Of a stretch of DNA of 64,000 nucleotides, positions 6,206 to 46,342 are shown one piece after another (positions within the stretch are counted from its first letter, which is position 1; every line of letters starts with the position of its first letter). The stretch is from assembly GCA_964188305.1 (NCBI GenBank), contig OZ076903.1; one strand, given 5' to 3'. The translations under genes and the position numbers were made by a program. The notes under the pieces were generated by a model. It was given only the letters and a program-made list of their open reading frames with translations, made no database searches and was not told the origin of the DNA. This DNA is from Podarcis bocagei (lineage: Eukaryota).

Positions 6206-6973
6206 TTTATCTATTCAGAGGCATACTGGCATTCTGTGAATGTATTGTTGTTAATTATGTATCATTGCACTGCCCTACACATTGCATAATTTCTTTCTAA
6301 ATACTAATTTAACTGTGTTTCTGCTCCCCTTGCTTTGAGCGTTGCTCCCATATAAAACACCAGTAAGATCAGGGTGCAGTTATATTATTTTTCTAAACCC
6401 CCTGCTTTTACACGAGATGCTAAATGCATGTCTGTGAGGTAAGAGTCATACCTGGCTTATAACAAGTTGTGTTTTCCATGCCCGAAATAGAACATTAAAT
6501 TAATGGCGTGCATTTGTATTGCAGCAACACTAATATTGCCATAATTAAACCGCCAGCTGTGTTCATCTGGTGCAAACCTGTTTCCTCTTGACACAGTTCA
6601 AACCAATCAGCTTCCCTTTCTGCTTCTCATTAATTGGAAATATGGCTTGAATCATATATTGCCAGCTGTGGCTGCTCACACACCATTCCCACTAAGGTTT
6701 GATACAAAGCATGCCGTTTTGAAGGACCCAGCAACCTGGTTGCTTGCCACTGTAGATTCACTCATACTATTGCTTTTAATGTATGAACCTCCCCTGCAGT
6801 GCTAGAAACTCAGATATATAAGCTAGGCAGCAAATAGCCCCTTAAACCAGGGTTGCAGCCACCAAAACGGAATGCCTAGTTGCCATTTTTGGGCCAGATG
6901 GCTCAAAGGTTGTATTTTTAATACGACTTTTGGGTTCCTGAAATTCATTCTGATTGTGTAGATGAAATATAAC

Positions 6974-7261
6974 CAGGGCTGGATTTAGGTTTGATGAGGC
7001 CCTAAGCTACTGAAGGTAATGGGGCCTTTTATATGTGATATTTTAGAGAGCAGGCTAGCAGGCCGTTACTTACATCATAGGAGCCTACACAACACAAAAC
7101 ACTGTTGCTGTATGAAGGTTTTATTTTATTTGTATTTTATCTTATATTTTGGAAATGTACATCAAGGGTTTTTTTTTCCTTTAATTTTTTTGAGCCCCCC
7201 CCCCCAAGAGAGTGGGGCTCTAAGCTATAGTTTGTTTAGCTTGTATGTAAATCTGCCACTG
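6974..7261. mobile_element. hAT-type non-autonomous element
   Basis: CAGGGCTGGATTTA...TAAATCTGCCACTG termini; TSD AATATAAC/TATATAAC. Confidence 0.7.
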
Positions 7262-7280
7262 TATATAACAGATTTTTACA

Positions 7281-8220
7281 AGGTAAAGGTAAAGGACCCC
7301 TAGACGGTTAAGTCCAGAAAAAGGCGACTATGGGGTTGTGGCTGTGATGGCCTGGGAATCCGATTCAGAGGCTGAACCGGAGGAATCCCAGCCTGCACAG
7401 GAGTCCCCGCCTCCAGGGCCGGCTGAACTGGGGCAGGGCCTTGATTCTGAGGCGCCTGCACCTGTGCCGGATCCTCAGGAGCAGGCACCAGGTGAATCCA
7501 CTCTGGCTCCGGAGGTGGTTGAGGACTCAGTGCCTACAGGTGAGTCTCCCCCTGGGTCCAGTAACCCTTCAGCCTCTCCTGAACTGCAGAGGCTCAGGGC
7601 AGAGAGGCGAAGGGAACTGGTTTCTCCCAGGAGGAGTGCTCACCTTAAGGCCAGGAGAGGCGGGTCTCCTGGGGGCCGAGACCGCCCCTGGCCTCAGAGA
7701 AGATAAAGGCCAGCCAGCCCGGTCCCAGGTTGCAGGAGCAACGTCGTTGATGAGCTGTTTCAGCCAGCATCCAGTCCTGTTCCCCCAGAGTTCCTGTCCT
7801 TGCCCGGCTTCTGCTTTGCCCAAGGAGGACTGTCTGGCGACCCTCAACTCAGGTCCTGGACCTCGCCCCACGGTAACCTCCCCCCTGGACCAGCACAGTG
7901 GCACACATCTTGCTTTCAGGCCGAGGGAGCCGGCGTTTGTCCACAGACAGCTTTCCGGGTCATGTGGCCAGCACGACTAAACTGCTTCTGGTGAAACGGG
8001 ACACCGTGACGAGTGCCAGAGCACATGGAAATGCTGTTTACCTTCCCGTCGCTGTCATACCTATTTATCTACTTGCGCTGGTGTGCTTTCGAACTGCTAG
8101 GTTCGCAGGAGCTGGGACAGAGCAACAGGAGCTCACTCTGTCATGGGGATTCGAACTGTCAACCTTCCCATTGGCAAGCCCAAGAGGCTCAGTGGTTTAG
8201 ACCACAGCGCCACCCACGTC
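7281..8220 (-). mobile_element. Sauria SINE interrupted by the solo LTR
   Basis: Tail AAGGTAAAGG at left, tRNA-like head at right. Confidence 0.9.
7343..7897 (+). mobile_element. Solo LTR (555 bp) inserted in a Sauria SINE, with a 119-codon ORF in U3
   Basis: TGTGATGG...CCAGCACA termini; perfect TSD GTGGC (7338-7342 and 7898-7902) splitting a colinear SINE. Confidence 0.85.
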
Positions 8221-11480: not shown

Positions 11481-12998
11481 TACATTTCAAATAATAATTA
11501 TATAGAATATATTAGTTTGCTGGCAGTTGTGCAGAGCATTTTGCGCGAATAAATGGCATTCCGTACTGGTTATTGGAGCTGCGTTTGAGAAAGCAGCTAT
11601 GAAATTGTTTTTAGAAGATTTAAGCAAAGATCTGAGAGTTTCCTTTCTCGCTTTGGAATTTCGCTGAGCTTTTTAGATGTGTAATTTCCTAAATGCTTGC
11701 ATTGTTTTATGTTGCTTTCATTCTCTCAAATGACTTGGCAATTGTTATATTTTGTGTTGGAATTAAGCATTCTATGAGGTTGTTCCAACAACATTACCGT
11801 TAATGCATGTCTGAGGTTGGCGAATTGGGACCATGGGGGTTTAAAAAACGTTTGAGAATAATTACTGGCAACAGTACTAGATTTTTACCTAGGGACATTC
11901 AGGTTCTATTTATATTGAGGGTACTTTCCATCCAAATCGGTCTTTCATTTGATTGGTAACATACCTCCACAGATAAAATAGAAAACGTATTGTTTAGCAA
12001 ATCATTGTGACTACAATTTGCAAGTTGCATCACAGTGTTCAGGCCTGAATGAGGAATGAGAATCTATATATTATTAAGAGCATTGGACTTGGACTAGCGA
12101 GTAGTGGGTTTAATGTCCATTCAGTCATGAATCTCACAGGCTCTTGGTTTAACCTACCTTTCAGGTAGTAAACTTTCGTTCTTTTACAAAGTGTATGTGC
12201 AAGGTTTTGTGTCAGCGTCATGTGTTGAGTATTGTGCTTTTAGATTATTATATTTTGCCGGAACAGCAGGATATAAAGTATTATTATAATAATGCCCTCC
12301 TTAGTTGGGGGAGAAGGCAAGCTTCTGTGTGAAAAAGGAGACAGAATTGCAATGAACAGTCAAGGTGTGTATATTTTTAAGGAAGAGCAAATATTAGAGA
12401 ATTACAATAAGCTTACAGGTGACCTTCCAAAAGAAGCCAAATCCTGCCCCTTAGAATAGTGACGTGTGTCAAATGTAAGACTTTCTTCTGTTTACTGGGG
12501 CCAAAATCCTGTGTTTTTCCTTGTTTTACAGCGATCTAGGCAAGACAGGTACAGGAGCCCTGAGAGAACAAACGTTGGCAACGCAAGTAGACAGAAGGGA
12601 GTCAGCCCATATTCAACTTCTGCATATCCAGCTGGCCCTGCCTACCTACCCCAATTTCCCCTGAACCATCTACTGGGGTTTCTCACTTCTTCCAGCCACC
12701 TCCCACTAGTAACTACCTCTTGCCCTCAGCCACCCTGTCCATTTGTGACATCACAGGAAGTTTGTAGTCCGTGGCAACTGCTTAGGGATGCATCTGCACA
12801 GCTTCCCATCCTGGTATTGGAAAGAGGAATGTCATGAACGCTACTTAGATGTATTTAGAAATACCTTGATTTAGAAATAGAAGATGGCTTGCTTAATAAT
12901 AATAATAATAATAATTTATTATTTGTACCCCGCCCATCTGGCTGGGTTTCCCCAGCCACTCTGGGCGGCTTCCACAGAAACCAAAAAACACTAAAATA

Positions 12999-15900
12999 TC
13001 ATACATTAAAAGCTTCCCTGAATAGGGCCGCCTTAAGATGTTTTCTGAATGTCAGGTAGTTGTCCATCACCTTGACATCCGATGGGAGGGCATTCCACAG
13101 GGCGGGCGCCACCACCGAAAAGGCCCTCTGCCTGGTTCCCTGTAGCTTCGCTTCTCGCAATGAGGGAACCGCCAGAAGGCCCTCGGCGCTGGACCTCAGT
13201 GTCCGGGCAGAACAATGGGGGTGGAGACGCTCCTTCAGGTATACTGGGCCGAAGCCGTTTAGGGCTTTAAAGGTCAACACCAACACTTTGAATTGTGCTC
13301 GGAAACGTACTGGGAGCCAATGTAGGTCTTTCAAGACCGGTGTTATGTGGTCTCGGCGGCCGCCCCCAGTCACCAGTCTAGCTGCCGCATTCTGGATTAG
13401 TTGTAGTTTCCGAGTCACCTTCAAAGGTAGCCCCACGTAGAGCGCATTGCAGTAGTCCAAGCGGGAGATAACTAGAGCATGCACCACTCTGGCCAGACAG
13501 TCAGCGGGCAGGTAGGGTCTCAGCCTGCGTACCAGGTGGAGTTGGTAGACAGCTGCCTTGGATACAGAATTGACCTGCGCCTCCATGGACAGCTGTGAGT
13601 CCAAAATGACTCCCAGGCTACGCACCTGGTCCTTCAGGGGCACAGTTACCCCATTCAGGACCAGGGAGTTCTCCACACCAGCCCGCCCCCTGTCCCCCAA
13701 AAACAGTACTTCTGTCTTGTCAGGATTCAACTTCAATCCATTAGCCGCCATCCATCCTCCAACCGCCTCCAGGCACTCACACAGGACCTTCACCGCCTTC
13801 ACTGGTTCTGATTTGAAAGAAAGGTAGAGCTGGGTATCATCTGCATATTGATGGACACCCAGTCCAAACCCCCTGATGATCTCTCCCAGCGGCTTCATAT
13901 AGATGTTAAAAAGCATGGGGGAGAGGACGGAACCCTGAGGCACCCCACAAGTGAGGGCCCAAGGGTCTGAACACTCATCCCCCACCACCACTTTCTGAAC
14001 ACGGCCCAGGAGAAAGGAGCGAAACCACTGTATAACAGTGCCCCCAGCTCCCAACCCCTCTAGACGGTCCAGAAGGATGTTATGGTCGATTGTATCAAAG
14101 GCCGCTGAGAGATCCAGCAGAACTAGGAAACAACTCTCACCTTTGTCCCTAGCTCGCCGGAGATCATCAACCAGTGCGACCAAGGCAGTTTCAGTCCCAT
14201 GATGAGGCCTGAACCCTGATTGGAAGGGATCCAAATGGTCCGCATCCTCCAGGCGTGCCTGGAGTTGTTCAGCAACCACACGCTCAATCACCTTGCCCAA
14301 GAATGGAAGATTTGAAACTGGGCGATAGTTGGCCATACTGGCCGGGTCTAAAGATGGTTTTTTAAGAAGCGGTTTAATGACCGCCTCTTTCAGCGGATCT
14401 GGGAATGTTCCCTCACAGAGGGAAGCATTCACCACCCCGCAGAGCCCATCGCCCAGCCCTTCCCGGCTAGCTTTTATAAGCCAGGATGGGCAAGGATCAA
14501 GGAGACAGGTGGTTGGTTTCACTCGTCCAAGCAGCCTGTCCACATCCTCGGGGGTAACGGATTGAAATTGATTCCATGCAACTTGACCAGACAGGGCTCT
14601 AGCACTCTCCCGCCCCAGCCCTGCTCCCACGGTGGTGTCTAGCTCCTTCCGAATATGAGTGATTTTATCTGCAAAAAACTTTGCAAAATCGTTGCAGGAG
14701 ATCTTGGGGTCTTTACAAGGCCCCGATGGTAAAGGTGGTTCCGTTAAATTGCGGACCACCTGAAAGAGTCTCCTGCTACTATTTTCTGCAGATGCAATAG
14801 AGGCGGCGAAGAAAGTCTTCTTTGCCGTCGCTATCGCCACTTGGTAGGCTCGACGTTGAGCTCTAACCTGTGTCCGGTCAGATTCGGAGTGAGTTTTCTG
14901 CCACCGACGCTCTAGCCGTCTCAGCGATTGTTTCATCGCCCTCAGCTCCGAAGAAAACCATGGGGCTGTCCGGGCTCCATGCAATCGGAGAGGGCGCTTC
15001 GGAGCCAGACAGTCGATAGCCCTGGTTAACTCCGCATTCCAGCGGGCCACCAGGGAATCAGCTGAAAGGCCATCAACACGGGATAAAGCATCCCCTACCA
15101 CTCTCTGGAAACCATTTGGATCCATTAAGTGGCGGGGGCGGACCATCCGAATTGGTCCCACCTCCCTGCAGAGGGGAAGGGTCGCGGAGAAGTCCAGTTG
15201 CACCAGGAAGTGATCTGACCATGGCACTTCTTTGGTTTCATTTTTACTTAGTGTCAGATCACCCACGTCGCTAGAGGTGAATACCAGGTCTAAGGCATGT
15301 CCATGACTATGAGTTGGGCCCAACTTATTCAGGGACAGCCCCATGGAGGCCATGCTTTCCACGAAGTCCCGAGCGGCCCCTTGTAAGGTCGTGTCGGCGT
15401 GGATGTTAAAATCCCCTAGGACAACCAAACTAGGTGTCTCCAGGAGAACATCCGCCACGACCTGAAGCAGCTCGGACAGGGAATCCTTGGTGCAGCGGGG
15501 AGGTCGGTACACCAAAAGGAATCCTGTACTGCCCCTATTGCCCAACTTCCAGAACATGCACTCAGAAAACTGGGTCTTCCCAGTAGGACGCCTGGTGCAG
15601 ACTAATGACTTCCTAAAAATCACTGCAACCCCCCCTCCCCGCCCACATGACCTGGGTTGCTGTGCGTAAGAGAAACCTGGTGGGCAAGCGGCAGCAAGGA
15701 CGGGCCCATCTGTCTCATTCAACCAGGTCTCTGTCACACAAGCCAGGTCAAATCCTCCATCCACAATCAGGTCGTGGATGGCAGTGGTTTTATTCACTAT
15801 TGACCTGGCATTACACAGCAACACCTTCAGGTTATGTGGGTTTCCCCTGTTGATTCCAGTATCCATCTGGTCAAGGCCAGACCCGGAGGCAGGGATAGTC

Positions 15901-16031
15901 TTCAAACAACGACTAAACCTGCCTCCTCGGTAATGACATGGTCTGGTCTTAGCGTAACTCCGCCTCCTGCCCATGATCACCGAGATCGGATGTCCCAGTG
16001 CTTCCCCCCCTGTGGAACTTGTCCCAGCCAT
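12999..16031 (-). CDS. LINE (L2/CR1 superclade) APE endonuclease-reverse transcriptase, ~1010 aa from the first ATG
   Basis: EN motifs NARS, VTETW, GDFN, LDLVF, SDH; RT motifs LDLSAAFDT, GVPQGSVLSP, YADDTQLY; L2-type C-terminus LDYCN..HITPVLKDLHWLP; no stop codons. Confidence 0.95.
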   Translation of the reverse strand: MAGTSSTGGEALGHPISVIMGRRRSYAKTRPCHYRGGRFSRCLKTIPASGSGLDQMDTGINRGNPHNLKVLLCNARSIVNKTTAIHDLIVDGGFDLACVTETWLNETDGPVLAAACPPGFSYAQQPRSCGRGGGVAVIFRKSLVCTRRPTGKTQFSECMFWKLGNRGSTGFLLVYRPPRCTKDSLSELLQVVADVLLETPSLVVLGDFNIHADTTLQGAARDFVESMASMGLSLNKLGPTHSHGHALDLVFTSSDVGDLTLSKNETKEVPWSDHFLVQLDFSATLPLCREVGPIRMVRPRHLMDPNGFQRVVGDALSRVDGLSADSLVARWNAELTRAIDCLAPKRPLRLHGARTAPWFSSELRAMKQSLRRLERRWQKTHSESDRTQVRAQRRAYQVAIATAKKTFFAASIASAENSSRRLFQVVRNLTEPPLPSGPCKDPKISCNDFAKFFADKITHIRKELDTTVGAGLGRESARALSGQVAWNQFQSVTPEDVDRLLGRVKPTTCLLDPCPSWLIKASREGLGDGLCGVVNASLCEGTFPDPLKEAVIKPLLKKPSLDPASMANYRPVSNLPFLGKVIERVVAEQLQARLEDADHLDPFQSGFRPHHGTETALVALVDDLRRARDKGESCFLVLLDLSAAFDTIDHNILLDRLEGLGAGGTVIQWFRSFLLGRVQKVVVGDECSDPWALTCGVPQGSVLSPMLFNIYMKPLGEIIRGFGLGVHQYADDTQLYLSFKSEPVKAVKVLCECLEAVGGWMAANGLKLNPDKTEVLFLGDRGRAGVENSLVLNGVTVPLKDQVRSLGVILDSQLSMEAQVNSVSKAAVYQLHLVRRLRPYLPADCLARVVHALVISRLDYCNALYVGLPLKVTRKLQLIQNAAARLVTGGGRRDHITPVLKDLHWLPVRFRAQFKVLVLTFKALNGFGPVYLKERLHPHCSARTLRSSAEGLLAVPSLREAKLQGTRQRAFSVVAPALWNALPSDVKVMDNYLTFRKHLKAALFREAFNV

Positions 16032-16321
16032 CGTGTTGGCTGGGGCCTCACTCCCAGGCAGCCCTGATCCCACCCCTTAAAAACAAAACACAAACTATAC
16101 AGAACCAATAAAAGAACAGAAAACAAAAACAGAACAATTACACTAAAATTAATCCCCAACCAAATATCCATTACACCCACCCACCCCCAGCAAGAGAAAA
16201 AAGGAAAAAAAGAAATACAAATTTAAATTGCCACCGACTGCTTGAGGACATTTTAAAACACATTGGAACAGGGAAGCAATTGCAGAACACTTCCCAGCTT
16301 CCCCAAAAGTTTGTTCCAAAT

Positions 16322-16904
16322 AAGGGCCTGGGCCATGCCCCCTGGGCCAGTTGGAGAAGGCCCTGGAAGGGAGCAGGCCCTGCAGTCCTCACCCAGCCGA
16401 TGGTCCGAGGCTTCCCTGCAGCAGGAGTCCCTTTATAGCCGGGAGAAAGGGCCTGGGCCACGCCCCCTGGGCCAGTTGGAGAAGGCCCTGGAAGGGAGCA
16501 GGCCCTGCAGTCCTCACCCAGCCGATGGTCCGAGGCTTCCCTGCAGCAGGAGTCCCTTTATAGCCGGGAGAAAGGGCCTGGGCCACGCCCCCTGGGCCAG
16601 TTGGAGAAGGCCCTGGAAGGGAGCAGGCCCTGCAGTCCTCACCCAGCCGATGGTCCGAGGCTTCCCTGCAGCAGGAGTCCCTTTATAGCCGGGAGAAAGG
16701 GCCTGGGCCACGCCCCCTGGGCCAGTTGGAGAAGGCCCTGGAAGGGAGCAGGCCCTGCAGTCCTCACCCAGCCGATGGTCCGAGGCTTCCCTGCAGCAGG
16801 AGTCCCTTTATAGCCGGGAGAAAGGGCCTGGGCCACGCCCCCTGGGCCAGTTGGAGAAGGCCCTGGAAGGGAGCAGGCCCTGCAGTCCTCACCCAGCCGA
16901 TGGT
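16322..16904 (-). repeat. Tandem array of ~4.7 x 125-bp near-identical units, each full unit with a GC box and TATAAA
   Basis: Units start at 16322, 16447, 16572, 16697 and 16822; TTTATA on the + strand at 16432, 16557, 16682 and 16807. Confidence 0.97.
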
Positions 16905-17779
16905 TAAGCTCTGCTGTCCCCTTCATTGCTGCTTTCGGGGAAAGCCTCGTTGGCTTGTGACATCCATGAAAGACAAACACAGATATGGTGAGGGGAATGA
17001 CCCTTGTTCAACAGTTATCATCCAAACACCTCCGTTGGCCAGCCTGCCAACCTCTGCTGGCTTCCACCCATGAATATCTACTGGTTCATTCGTCCAGAGC
17101 CTGGAGGGCAGCCTACACTGCTATCTGAACATGCAATTCCCAGGCATACTGTGTCTGGTGGATGACCTATGTCCACACTCTCCATTCATACTTACCCCAG
17201 CATCAGATGACAAATATCCACACAGCTTTTGTCAATGACCTTCTGAAGGTGAATTTCAACCAGCTTACGTGCACAAACTTCAGCCCTGCAGCATCCCGGG
17301 CTTCCACATGCTAATCACAGCTTCTGCCAGCTCCATCGCCAGCTTCCAACCATGGATATCTGCCGCTTTGAAGCCGCGGTCCTGCTCAGCAGGTACACTT
17401 GCCTTCTCATTCCTCCACAGCATCTCATTGACGGATGATGGCCTCCTTCCATTTGCCACTTCGCCTCCATGCGGAAGGAGATCACCAAGTACTGAATAAC
17501 ACAACTGTTGTCCACAGTGTCCTTTTCAAGCTTTGCCTTGGGCTTTCCCCTTGGGCCGCTTTTGTATATCCACTGAGCTGCCATGTGCTTATGTGACATC
17601 ACTGGGCGTCCACAGCCAATAACACCAGCTGGAGAGGCATCATGATCATCACCTCCTCAGGCTTCACAATGGTGGGTGCAGCTCAGCAGCCATTTGCCAT
17701 TTGCTTGTTTGCTATGTACAGCTCACTCCTTATTTATAATGACATCAGAAAAAGGCATGCCATAAATCCACCTTCCCAT

Positions 17780-22094: not shown

Positions 22095-23460
22095 GTTTTG
22101 TCTCGTGCTCCCCCCCCAGCACATGGGACCGGGGGGGGGAGCAGCTACTCTGACGTCCCTCGGAGCACCTTCGAAGCAGAGGCGCCCTCCCCAACTTCCA
22201 ATGTCTATGACATCACTCCGCTTCGCCAGCGAGAGCTCCGCCCCAGGCAGGAGGAGCCGGAGCGAACCATTGTCCCCAAAAGAAGCGGGGGTGGAGGGAA
22301 AGAAGGGAAATCCCTTCTCACGGCTCGCCATGCCTCGTTAGCGCCGAACCTTCCCGCTCACCCACACGGACCGCTGAAGCGACACTTGCCCCGGGAGACC
22401 CCAGTGTGTAGGCGCCTTTTCTACATTTGTGCGTGTCTCCGCTATCTCTCTCTCCCCCCCCCATACGGATGGACGCCGCCGAGCTCAGGCGCGAAAGAGA
22501 GAGACAGAGACAGAGAGCGAGCGCGCTTTCAGGCAGCTGGCGCGAGGGGGGCGGCTGCGCCTGCGCGAACCGCGCTGCCGAGCCCTGCGCTGTTTCCCTT
22601 CCCTCTTACGAAAGGGCGGGAGGGGAGGGGGAGCGCCGCGGAGGGGGGCGCGCGGGTCTCTCTCGCGCGCGTGCGCGGGGCAGGTAAGCGGCTGTTTGGC
22701 GGCCGTTGGGGCTCCGTGAGGCGAGGGAGGTTGGGGGGAGGAGGTGGGTCCGGTGAGGGAAAAGAGAGGCGGCGGCTTCTCCTCCTCCTCCTCTCCCGCC
22801 CTCACACGGAGAGCGATGGAGAGAGCCCTTCCCGCCAAAACGGGGCAAGAGGCGGCTGCGCTGGCCTGGCGGCCTCGGGAAGCGCCGGGGAGGCGGATCC
22901 TGAGGGGGAAACCTTGACTATTATACCGATATAGTATACCGATATATGTGCGTGTGTGTTTGCGGTTACCTCAGACGCTGTGCTTCCTCCACAACCCTTG
23001 TGTCCTCCCTCAAGTGTGTCGTGAGGACGGTGTTTTCGCGTGTCGGCGGCGGCGGCAGCAGCACCAGCAACAACATGAGCCGCGATTTCAAACCCGGGGA
23101 CCTGATCTTCGCCAAGATGAAAGGCTACCCGCATTGGCCAGCCCGGGTCAGTAAGGCGCCGCCTCCTCCTTCCCTCATCCATCCCTCCTTCACCTGCGTT
23201 CCCACGAGCGCGCTTTTCACACGCGCGGGGCGGGGGAAACGTTCGTGGGGAACCCGCCCCCTTCCCCTCCACTCGCTTTTTTCCCACGGGGTTGTTCGGG
23301 GTTCACCCGTCCGGACCTCTTGCCCCCCTCCCCTTGCTTCGTCCTCCCCCCGCCGGCCTCTCTCTTGGGAAGGGAGGGGGCGTGTTCGTGGCGTCCCTGG
23401 AAGTGACTTCTCCATCACATTGCAAGGTGCCCACATGCTGCGGTTCGGCGCAGGGTGTGT
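22095..23460 (+). promoter_or_regulatory. PSIP1: PSIP1 CpG island and promoter; non-coding exon 1 ends at 22683; exon 2 starts at 22975
   Basis: Very high GC and CpG content. E2F-type GGCGCGAAA (22488-22496) and TTCCCGCCAAA (22829-22839), GC box (~22546-22554), NRF1-type TGCGCCTGCGC (22556-22566). CAG|GTAAGC donor and CTCAG acceptor. Confidence 0.85.
23075..23146 (+). CDS. PSIP1: PSIP1/LEDGF first coding exon, PWWP start ([24 protein letters not shown])
   Basis: Near-identical to the LEDGF N-terminus; GTCAGT donor. Confidence 0.97.
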
Positions 23461-29086: not shown

Positions 29087-30043
29087 CAGTGGTGCCTCGC
29101 AAGACAAAAAGAATCCGTTCTGTGATTCTCTTCGTCTAGCGGTTTTTTCGTCTTGCGAAGGAAGCCCATTGACGGATTAGCGCTATTAGCGGCTTTTAGC
29201 GGCTTATCTGCTGATCGGAACACCTGCCCCCACCGCCCCGCTTCGGAACGCTGCTCCGAAGCGGGGCGGGGGGGCGGGAACACCTGCCCCCACCGCCCGG
29301 CTTCGGAACGCTGCTCCGAAGCGGGGCGGGGGGGCGGGAACACCTGCCCCAGCCGCCCCGCTTCGGAACGCTGCTCCGAAGCGGGGCGGGGGGCGGGAAC
29401 ACCTGCCCCAGCCGCCCCGCTTCGGAACGCTGCTCCGAAGCGGGGCGGGGACACCTGCCCCAGCCGCCCCGCTTCGGAACGCTGCTCCGAAGCGGGGCAG
29501 GGGGCGGGGACACCTGCCCCAGCCGCCCCGCTTCGGAACGCTGCTCCGAAGCGGGGCGGGGGGCGGGGACACCTGCCCCAGCCGCCCCGCTTCGGAACGC
29601 TGCTCCGAAGCGGGGCGGGGGGGCGGGAACACCTTCTGAAGGCAGGCGGGGGGCGAAAGTCTTTGTCCCCCCTGCCTGCCTTCCCAGGGGCTTTTAAATC
29701 GCCCCGGACAGCGGAGAAGTCCTCCGCTGTCCCGGGGCGATTTTAAAATGCCGCCCGCCAGCATTTTAAGATCGCCCGGACAGCGGAGAAGTCCTCCGCT
29801 GTCCCGGGGTTTTTTAAAATGCTGGGGGTGGGAAGAAAAGCCCTTGTCCCCCCCCCCCCCCCAGCCTTCAGAAGAGGTCCGGGGACAGACTGTCCCCGGA
29901 CCTGGTCTGAAGGCGGTTTCCCTAGGAACGCATTAATTGATTTTCAATGCATTCCTATGGGAAACCGTGCATCACAAGACGAAAAACTCGCAAGACGAAG
30001 AGACTTGCGGAACGAATTAATTTCGTCTTGCGAGGCACCACTG
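29087..30043. mobile_element. TA-MITE family B (TIR CAGTGGTGCCTCGCAAGAC), long form carrying a GC-rich hairpin minisatellite
   Basis: Long TIRs and TA TSD. Confidence 0.88.
29216..29635. repeat. ~7 x 52-60-bp GC-rich minisatellite, each unit a hairpin
   Basis: Unit core CCGCCCCGCTTCGGA-ACGCTGC-TCCGAAGCGGGGCGG. Confidence 0.95.
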
Positions 30044-44739: not shown

Positions 44740-45281
44740 GTTTATGCAGAAAAGGCAGCTCTGTATATTTTAATGAGAAATCTTCCCTTTAGTACAGAGT
44801 CAGAGAGACTGCTCACTCAGTGAAAGAGGCTAATTTACCTATTTAACTGGTTCCTCATCTTTCATAGACTGCTATTCAAAAGGAGCCCTCAGAGGCACAC
44901 ATTCCTTTGCTTCGTAGCTGAGGTAAAGATTTTAACACAGTCTTTCTGGGCGCTGTGAGACATTCTAAGTACTATAACACTTTAGCTCTCATTTGGCATT
45001 TTTCACAAAACTTAATATTACTGAAATAGTTCTGTATATCAGACAGTTAGAAGAACTTGATAGGAAAAAAATTCATGATGCAAGCATGTAAATTTACAAA
45101 TCAAAATTCAAGCTAGAATGGAGGTTGCTAACCTTTTTGGGCAAGAGAGCATTGGGAATTTTGAGGAAGTGGGTGCTAGTAACAAGATGGCTACTGTAGG
45201 GTGTAGCAGAACACAAAACAAGTGTTGTGGCCATAGAATGGTGCAAGCATTGCCCTGGTCAGTGGAAAAAAGAGCCTACAA

Positions 45282-45307
45282 GCTGCTGCTGCTGCTGCTG
45301 CTGCTGC
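45282..45307. repeat. (CTG)n microsatellite
   Basis: Seen directly. Confidence 0.95.
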
Positions 45308-46342
45308 ACTCGCTGGCAAAGAGAAGCTCTTTGCACATCTCATTGCTTCAGAACAGAAGAGAGGGTTGGTGCCCAACCAGTGAACTCTGGGCATTGCACA
45401 ATCATTAAAAAAAATGTTTAAGGGGGGTTGTTCAGGGTTGAAGAGGCCGAGGCAGCACAAAAGAGGAAATAAATACTGAGAGCTTTTGTGAGTGCCATAG
45501 GAGGTACCAGTGGGCGTAAGGTGCCTGAAGGTCCTATAAAAATAAAAGGTAAAGGACCTGTGCTGGTGGCCCCAGCTTACAGAGCCATCTATCGGAATCC
45601 CAAGCTGAACACTTAGGTCTGGATTCAAATAAGTTGTTGCACTAGCAGAAGCCTGCACAACAAGTGCTGTTAGCACAATGAGACGTTTTCTTCCTCTTCT
45701 GCAAAACATCCTCATCATCTCTGGAGAATCCCAGAAGAGCACATTGGTGATTCTGTCCGTCAAGCAGAAATGCTTGTGCTGATGGAATGATCTTACCATG
45801 ACCCCAAATCATTTCCAAGGCTTGAGTAAACAGCTGTGATTTAGGCAGACAATCAAATGAAGAGTGTCAGGTTCAGTTCAGAGTGGAGGGGATTCCACAA
45901 GCACTGCAACCTCCTCTGCCCTTCCTGGTGACCTGATCCAGTGGCTTCATTTAGCTCAAGTGTGGGGAACCTCAAATGAAGCTCTCGCCCAGCACTGACT
46001 GGACTCAAACTTTCCTAGCTTCATCATGGTTACTGTTTCATTTAATTTCAGGCCATCTCCTACAATCAATGTCTGATAAACTGTTTCAGGAAACATCCTA
46101 AAACGGGGTAACCAATATGGTGCTCCCCAGATATTGTTTGGACTCCCAACTGTTATCTTTGTTGATGTCGGCTGGGACTTTGGGGAATCTAAAAAAAGTT
46201 CTAACAACTTTTGGAGATCCACAGGTTCCCCAGCCCTGATACAGATGTTAAATACTATGTGCATATTGATCACAGGTATCCCTTCAATATACGTTGCCTT
46301 CAGCCTGTAACATGTTGGGGCACGTTACACATAGTTCTACAT

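Follow-up and report, generated by a model that had tools for sequence, protein, structure and literature searches.

The L2-type LINE that occupies about 12893–16904 on the minus strand of the analysed stretch of DNA (64,000 nucleotides, hereafter the window) is intact, has one ORF for an endonuclease and a reverse transcriptase, and begins with a tandem array of 125-bp units (16322–16904). The anatomy of the element is clear, its outer boundary could be fixed, its monomers are homologous to the 111-bp monomers of a sister subfamily, and L2 monomers of other squamates have a TATA box as well. Promoter activity, the position of the start, the loss of units and their regrowth are inferences from these observations: we incline to the view that each 125-bp monomer is an RNA polymerase II promoter composed of a GC box and a TATA box, units being lost in retrotransposition and the array growing again by duplication.

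Structure of the L2 element

The features of the element are given below in the coordinates of the window; those of the TATA boxes, GC boxes and ACCATC motifs were checked by script.

12893–12998, minus strand: 3′ UTR, with the conserved L2 3′ end at 12926–12969 and an (ATT)7 tail at 12895–12915
12999–16031, minus strand: intact ORF of 1010 aa encoding a reverse transcriptase (with YADD) and an apurinic-type endonuclease; start codon ATG at 16031, stop codon at 12999–13001
16032–16321, minus strand: unique, T-rich tether of 290 nt from the array to the ORF; no ORF1
16322–16404, minus strand: innermost partial monomer of 83 nt, adjoining the tether; GC box mutated to GGGGCATGGC, no TATA
16405–16904, minus strand: four identical full 125-bp monomers, framed from ACCATC, each with a GC box, TATAAA and a GTGAGG 5′-splice-site-like motif
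16807–16812 (outermost), 16682–16687, 16557–16562 and 16432–16437, minus strand: TATAAA
16832–16841 (outermost), 16707–16716, 16582–16591 and 16457–16466, minus strand: Sp/KLF-type GC box GGGGCGTGGC
16404, 16529, 16654, 16779 and 16904, minus strand: first base of ACCATC
16779, 16654, 16529 and 16404, minus strand: putative start sites (A of ACCATC), 33 nt downstream of the first T of each TATAAA, placed by the element's own 5′ end
16904–16907, minus strand: TTAA of the 5′ junction, repeated at the 3′ junction (12893–12896); 4-nt target-site duplication or microhomology with the tail

The protein encoded by the ORF contains the Pfam domains Exo_endo_phos, Exo_endo_phos_2 and RVT_1 and shares 92% identity with RT proteins of Podarcis muralis; the exact protein is not on record in public assemblies. 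As in the L2 clade, a single long ORF has an N-terminal apurinic-type endonuclease followed by the reverse transcriptase. The 3′ end is also L2-like, with a microsatellite tail, (ATT)7, and not poly-A; four further Podarcis copies (L001–L004) have this tail and the 3′ block in common with it. The nearest non-squamate relatives named by source are teleost proteins (36–40% identity over 70–93% of the query). Teleost ‘CR1’ elements have been assigned to L2, and L2 elements without ORF1 have been described in lepidosaurs (PMC13343379). Indirect support for the putative placement of the element in L2, rather than in CR1 or Rex1, comes from the missing ORF1 and the teleost relatives.

Further copies of the monomer blocks or of the L2 3′ end were not found elsewhere in the 64-kb window. 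Another, GC-rich tandem array is located at 29217–29634 (59-bp units, 7.2 copies), each unit having an internal palindrome (CCCCGCTTCGG...CCGAAGCGGGG); it is enclosed in a hairpin-rich repeat and bears no relation to the monomers of the L2. The ORFs at 22098–22934 (plus strand, 278 aa) and 45191–45799 (minus strand, 202 aa) have no Pfam match.

The 125-bp monomers

Tandem Repeats Finder reports a period of 125, 4.7 copies and 99% matches for 16322–16904, a unit count that is as assembled, short-read contigs collapsing the array. Together with the 1010-aa ORF, this result agrees with the preliminary description, in which an intact LINE began with 4.7 near-identical 125-bp units. On the minus strand, each full unit reads GGGGCGTGGC, 19 nt, TATAAA, 27 nt and ACCATCGGCTGG, the block that contains ACCATC. 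The 27 nt between TATA and ACCATC had been given correctly before, and the distance from the GC box to TATA, previously put at ~21 nt, is corrected here to 19 nt by script. The 83-nt inner unit differs from the full units at one base, a G>A change within the GC box. In a pattern search of the window, the 40-nt block from the GC box to TATA gave four matches and the ACCATCGGCTGG block gave five, with a chance expectation of 0 for either in shuffled sequence. The 125-bp monomer is CpG-poor (observed/expected 0.28) and so is not a CpG-island promoter.

Each monomer also includes a 5′-splice-site-like motif, CTGG|GTGAGG, ~12 nt past the putative start (16887–16892, 16762–16767, 16637–16642, 16512–16517 and 16387–16392, minus strand). 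At the aligned position, the 111-bp sister monomer has TGT|GTGAGT, and CAG|GTGTG is the counterpart in the Hemicordylus and Varanus monomers described below. This motif may serve elongation as a U1 site, or may give rise to chimeric splicing into host genes.

The 5′ boundary and the insertion site

Two contigs of DNA run X14, which comes from a related lizard, align from position 16904 outward and lack the insertion. In these contigs the 14 letters just before 16904 match, in exact reverse complement, the 14 nt beyond the 3′ tail of the L2, and the unoccupied site rebuilt from them is AGC-TTAA-GCAAGCC. Since TTAA is present at both ends, the first base of the L2 is A16904 or C16903. This 5′ end lies 33–34 nt past the first T of the TATA box that the missing upstream unit would have had. 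The outer boundary had been proposed at 16903–16904, at ACCATC and ~33 nt past such a would-be TATA, and the unoccupied-site contigs fix it there.

The flank of the insertion (16905–17300 and 12500–12892) has a summed word depth of 60–120 in a DNA run of ~1.3 billion letters and occurs in several contig variants, which shows that the flank is itself a repeat. The X14 contigs may be paralogous copies of this repeat rather than an empty allele. Whichever of the two they are, the array and the L2 were inserted together, as one piece. The contigs accordingly rule against the alternative, also considered, that the array occurs independently of the L2.

The 111-bp sister subfamily and other Podarcis copies

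Loci for comparison were taken from a few NCBI-annotated fragments in the cluster of the best protein match. Three of these Podarcis copies (L002, L003 and L004) are 5′-truncated and have no arrays. A further locus, L006, is a short internal contig. The sister subfamily is represented by L001, a full-length P. muralis copy whose ORF is ~88–92% identical. Its array (6897–7988) consists of 9.8 units of 111 bp, against 4.7 units in the window copy, so that unit number differs between the two. TATG is duplicated on either side of L001 (4 nt), and when the target is rebuilt with a single TATG, an L1 ORF1-like frame continues through the joint; on these grounds the boundaries of L001 are secure.

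Alignment of the 111-bp and 125-bp monomers gives 46 invariant columns, including the GTGAG motif and the GC box (GGGCGGGGCC), which is the best conserved block of the two. The 111-bp monomer has no TATA: CTCACA stands at that place, and CATAAGG in one unit. By eye, ACCATC is placed elsewhere in the 111-bp unit and is therefore not the conserved feature. A YY1-type initiator at ACCATC was considered and rejected, as only its CCAT core fits by eye.

The first base of L001 is at most 4 aligned columns from the first base of the window copy, at a C/A step, so the two bounded Podarcis copies (n = 2) have 5′ ends within 4 aligned columns of each other. The chance of L001 landing so close is about 9 in 111 (about 8%), and L001 is the only independent test of phase, because the window copy prompted the hypothesis. 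Since the 111-bp monomer shares the 5′ phase and has no TATA, the TATA box may not set the start; GC-box or initiator elements may do so instead.

Units within an array are 99–100% identical, and the ORFs of different copies differ by 3–9%. Units 6 and 9 of L001, three units apart, have a common G>A variant, which hints at block duplication, an event of the type that regrowth of the array would need. Monomer words are very deep in the DNA runs of several organisms, deeper than tether words. Judged by DNA read depth, full-length copies of the L2 family are probably numerous.

In both Podarcis subfamilies, the CpG of the GC box has become CpA in the innermost monomer (16332–16341; L001 7960–7969), the GC boxes of the outer units being intact. 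This would fit an inner unit that is never renewed and outer units that turn over.

Monomers in other squamate L2 elements

Arrays of other lengths are present in L2 elements of two other squamate families. In the element of Hemicordylus capensis (59% protein identity) the unit is 163 bp long, occurs 4.4 times and contains CTATATAGGG each time. In that of Varanus komodoensis (56% identity) it is 253 bp long, occurs 2.6 times and has the layout in common with Podarcis, namely GGGGCGT, about 20 nt and CGGCTATAAAG, TACAAA variants being present as well. No array is present in a second Hemicordylus copy (L005) or in two copies from Ahaetulla (L009 and L010), all apparently truncated. In JGI metagenome contigs, the TATA block gave 0 matches.

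Sense-strand TATAWA is found in three of the four squamate L2 monomer types: Podarcis 125, Hemicordylus 163 and Varanus 253. The composition-based chance of its occurrence per monomer is 0.0033, 0.0145 and 0.0014, respectively. At a chance of 0.1–1.5%, its presence in three of four types is not accidental, whether it was inherited or arose by convergence.

The 5′ ends of these two elements are out of TATA phase (one copy of each). The Hemicordylus copy begins 121 nt after a TATA, and its 5′ joint lies within an ATCT microhomology with the (TATC)n target. In the Varanus copy, the first base precedes a TATA by 15 nt. A stretch of 14 extra nt (tctgatttctgtgg; L007 24327–24340) separates the first monomer of this copy from the BovB-like target; it may represent filler DNA or else a short 5′ transduction.

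The tethers of the window copy (about 16240–16265), of L001 (8040–8070) and of the Varanus element (L007 25305–25345) contain an AT-rich motif resembling TTTTAAAATGTTTTAAAATT. It is common to Podarcis and Varanus L2 elements, which share only 56% protein identity.

Transcription and RNA structure

Reads of two stranded RNA runs (X23 and X24) of a related organism and of two DNA runs were mapped. About 180 reads per RNA run were placed, the majority on the ORF and in both directions, as is expected of a dispersed repeat. Array depth was 0–5 reads, and start pile-ups were not seen at this depth of ordinary RNA-seq. In X24, about 11 reads of the array were in the sense of the element (assuming a dUTP library) versus about 2 in the opposite sense, the ORF being balanced, and 5 reads spanned the junction between tether and array; in X23, strand bias over the array was absent. 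RNA containing the array exists at a low level, and nothing firm on start sites follows from it. Both RNA runs show transcription of the insertion flank in one direction only, antisense to the L2.

The element has no match to an Rfam family. The RNA of two units folds no better than shuffled sequence (z = −1.2), which leaves a structured-RNA role without support.

Proposed mechanism and alternative explanations

In a TATA-box core promoter, TATAWA precedes the start by about 28–34 nt and activator sites lie upstream; 33 or 34 nt is the long edge of the usual spacing. The array would be the 5′ UTR of a young, intact, ORF1-less lacertid L2 LINE and resembles the monomer arrays of rodent L1 in its build. 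Each monomer would fire near the next ACCATC, its Sp/KLF GC box lying ~60 nt and its TATA ~33 nt upstream of the start. Copying would be limited to the RNA downstream of the start used, so a new insertion would begin at a monomer start and lack the promoter of its parent. If a monomer is the promoter, at least one unit is lost per cycle. Offspring of the window copy are predicted to have 3.7, 2.7, 1.7 or 0.7 units, the last being promoter-dead. The lineage could survive only via re-expansion of the array, by duplication of units or blocks through unequal exchange, slippage or template switching.

The idea of a consumed promoter, already put forward in the preliminary description, is partly upheld. 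It gains from the array belonging to the L2, the boundary at 33–34 nt, the phase of L001 and the recurrence of TATA, and it loses from the Hemicordylus and Varanus copies, which are out of phase, and from the 111-bp monomer, which is in phase without a TATA. A bolder version, to which we give little credence, is that the TATA and GC-box monomer is an old, selectively kept promoter module of squamate L2 elements (Lacertidae, Varanidae, perhaps Cordylidae) that would serve as a generation counter: each retrotransposition would remove the promoter used, and survival would depend on re-expansion alone, possibly by RT template switching at the RNA 5′ end.

The monomers could also be promoters in which the TATA box is auxiliary or a recent addition, the start being set by the GC box and an initiator-like pyrimidine–purine step and the 33-nt spacing being partly coincidence. 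The 111-bp monomer is in favour of this explanation, as it retains the GC box, has CTCACA in place of TATA and has a homologous 5′ start at a C/A step; a spacing of −33/−34 is moreover long for a TATA-directed start. We nevertheless regard it as unlikely in view of the sense TATAWA in three monomer types, far over composition-based chance, and of CATAAGG, which occupies the place of TATA in one 111-bp unit. Doubtful, too, is a transcribed 5′ UTR repeat without a promoter role, a by-product of RT template switching or a binding platform, with transcription from elsewhere and a 5′ end that is a truncation or microhomology joint. Such a repeat would agree with the RNA reads, which give no direct evidence of start sites, with the out-of-phase ends in Hemicordylus, where the joint has microhomology, and in Varanus, and with the extra nucleotides at the Varanus joint. 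However, a dispersed LINE requires a promoter that travels with it, and the 290-nt tether has no promoter-like feature. The GC-box and TATA content of the array is non-random, the two bounded Podarcis copies have a common phase, and a signal of RNA structure is absent.

Expansion of the array during assembly, or a satellite without relation to the L2 that happens to adjoin it, is very improbable. Collapse of the array in short-read contigs means that the unit count at this locus rests on the assembly, but the X14 contigs show insertion of array and L2 as one piece, the depth of monomer words in the DNA runs of several organisms exceeds that of tether words, and L001 has a homologous array at the same place. 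On the preferred reading, in which the monomers are promoters of the GC-box and TATA type, stacked and self-consuming promoters would have arisen independently in L2 and in rodent L1, here on the basis of TATA. If true, this would offer a handle on why some squamate L2 lineages stay active.

Comparison with known systems

To our knowledge, little has been established about the transcription of LINEs outside the L1 clade. LINEs had been held to avoid the classical TATA box. No account of TATA-box monomers in L2 turned up in the literature searches. The preliminary description held the arrangement to be undescribed for L2, and this stands for the promoter, which PMC13343379 does not analyse; the repeats themselves had been noted there. 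According to that paper (2026), some ORF1-less elements of the CR1 group have 1–5 species-specific repeating subunits of 100–500 bp near the 5′ UTR. They resemble the present element in these repeats, the single ORF and the missing ORF1. The account is a structural note that covers neither motifs, boundary phase, promoter or turnover model nor arrays of ~10 units such as that of L001.

Human L1 likewise has a polymerase II promoter inside the 5′ UTR of a LINE. It differs in that transcription starts at the first base via downstream elements (YY1), with no loss on copying, no repeats and no TATA. Drosophila HeT-A and TART share with the L2 a promoter upstream of the start, which would be lost on copying, and a tandem arrangement as the solution. 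In HeT-A, however, the promoter at the 3′ end of one element drives the next in a head-to-tail telomeric array, whereas the L2 repeats lie inside one dispersed element. The HeT-A model was rejected because the L2 copies are dispersed and not arranged head to tail.

The closest parallel in plan is L1 of mouse and rat (L1Md A, Tf and Gf), with tandem monomers at the 5′ end, a unique tether, an ORF and a variable number of monomers (PMC6454616, PMC5381506). In lizard L1 elements, the 5′ UTRs have no tandem duplication (PMC5381506). For mouse L1, the 5′ truncation site within the first monomer has been taken as the start site of the parent, duplication of monomers is said to maintain promoters despite truncation-prone retrotransposition, and expansion by second-strand priming and unequal crossing-over have been proposed as models of regrowth (PMC6454616). 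The logic of unit consumption has thereby been published for mouse L1 and is not a new principle. Rodent L1 also has a preferred site for the 5′-most end and a cycle of monomer loss and regrowth, for which the L2 counterparts are putative. It belongs to another clade, the present element being of the L2/CR1 group and without ORF1, and its units are about 200 bp long as opposed to 125 bp. Rodent L1 monomers are YY1-linked, CpG-rich and TATA-less, whereas the L2 monomer, a putative promoter, is CpG-poor and has a canonical TATA box and a GC box. What appears to be new is the occurrence of the monomeric LINE promoter plan in another clade and with a TATA-box architecture.
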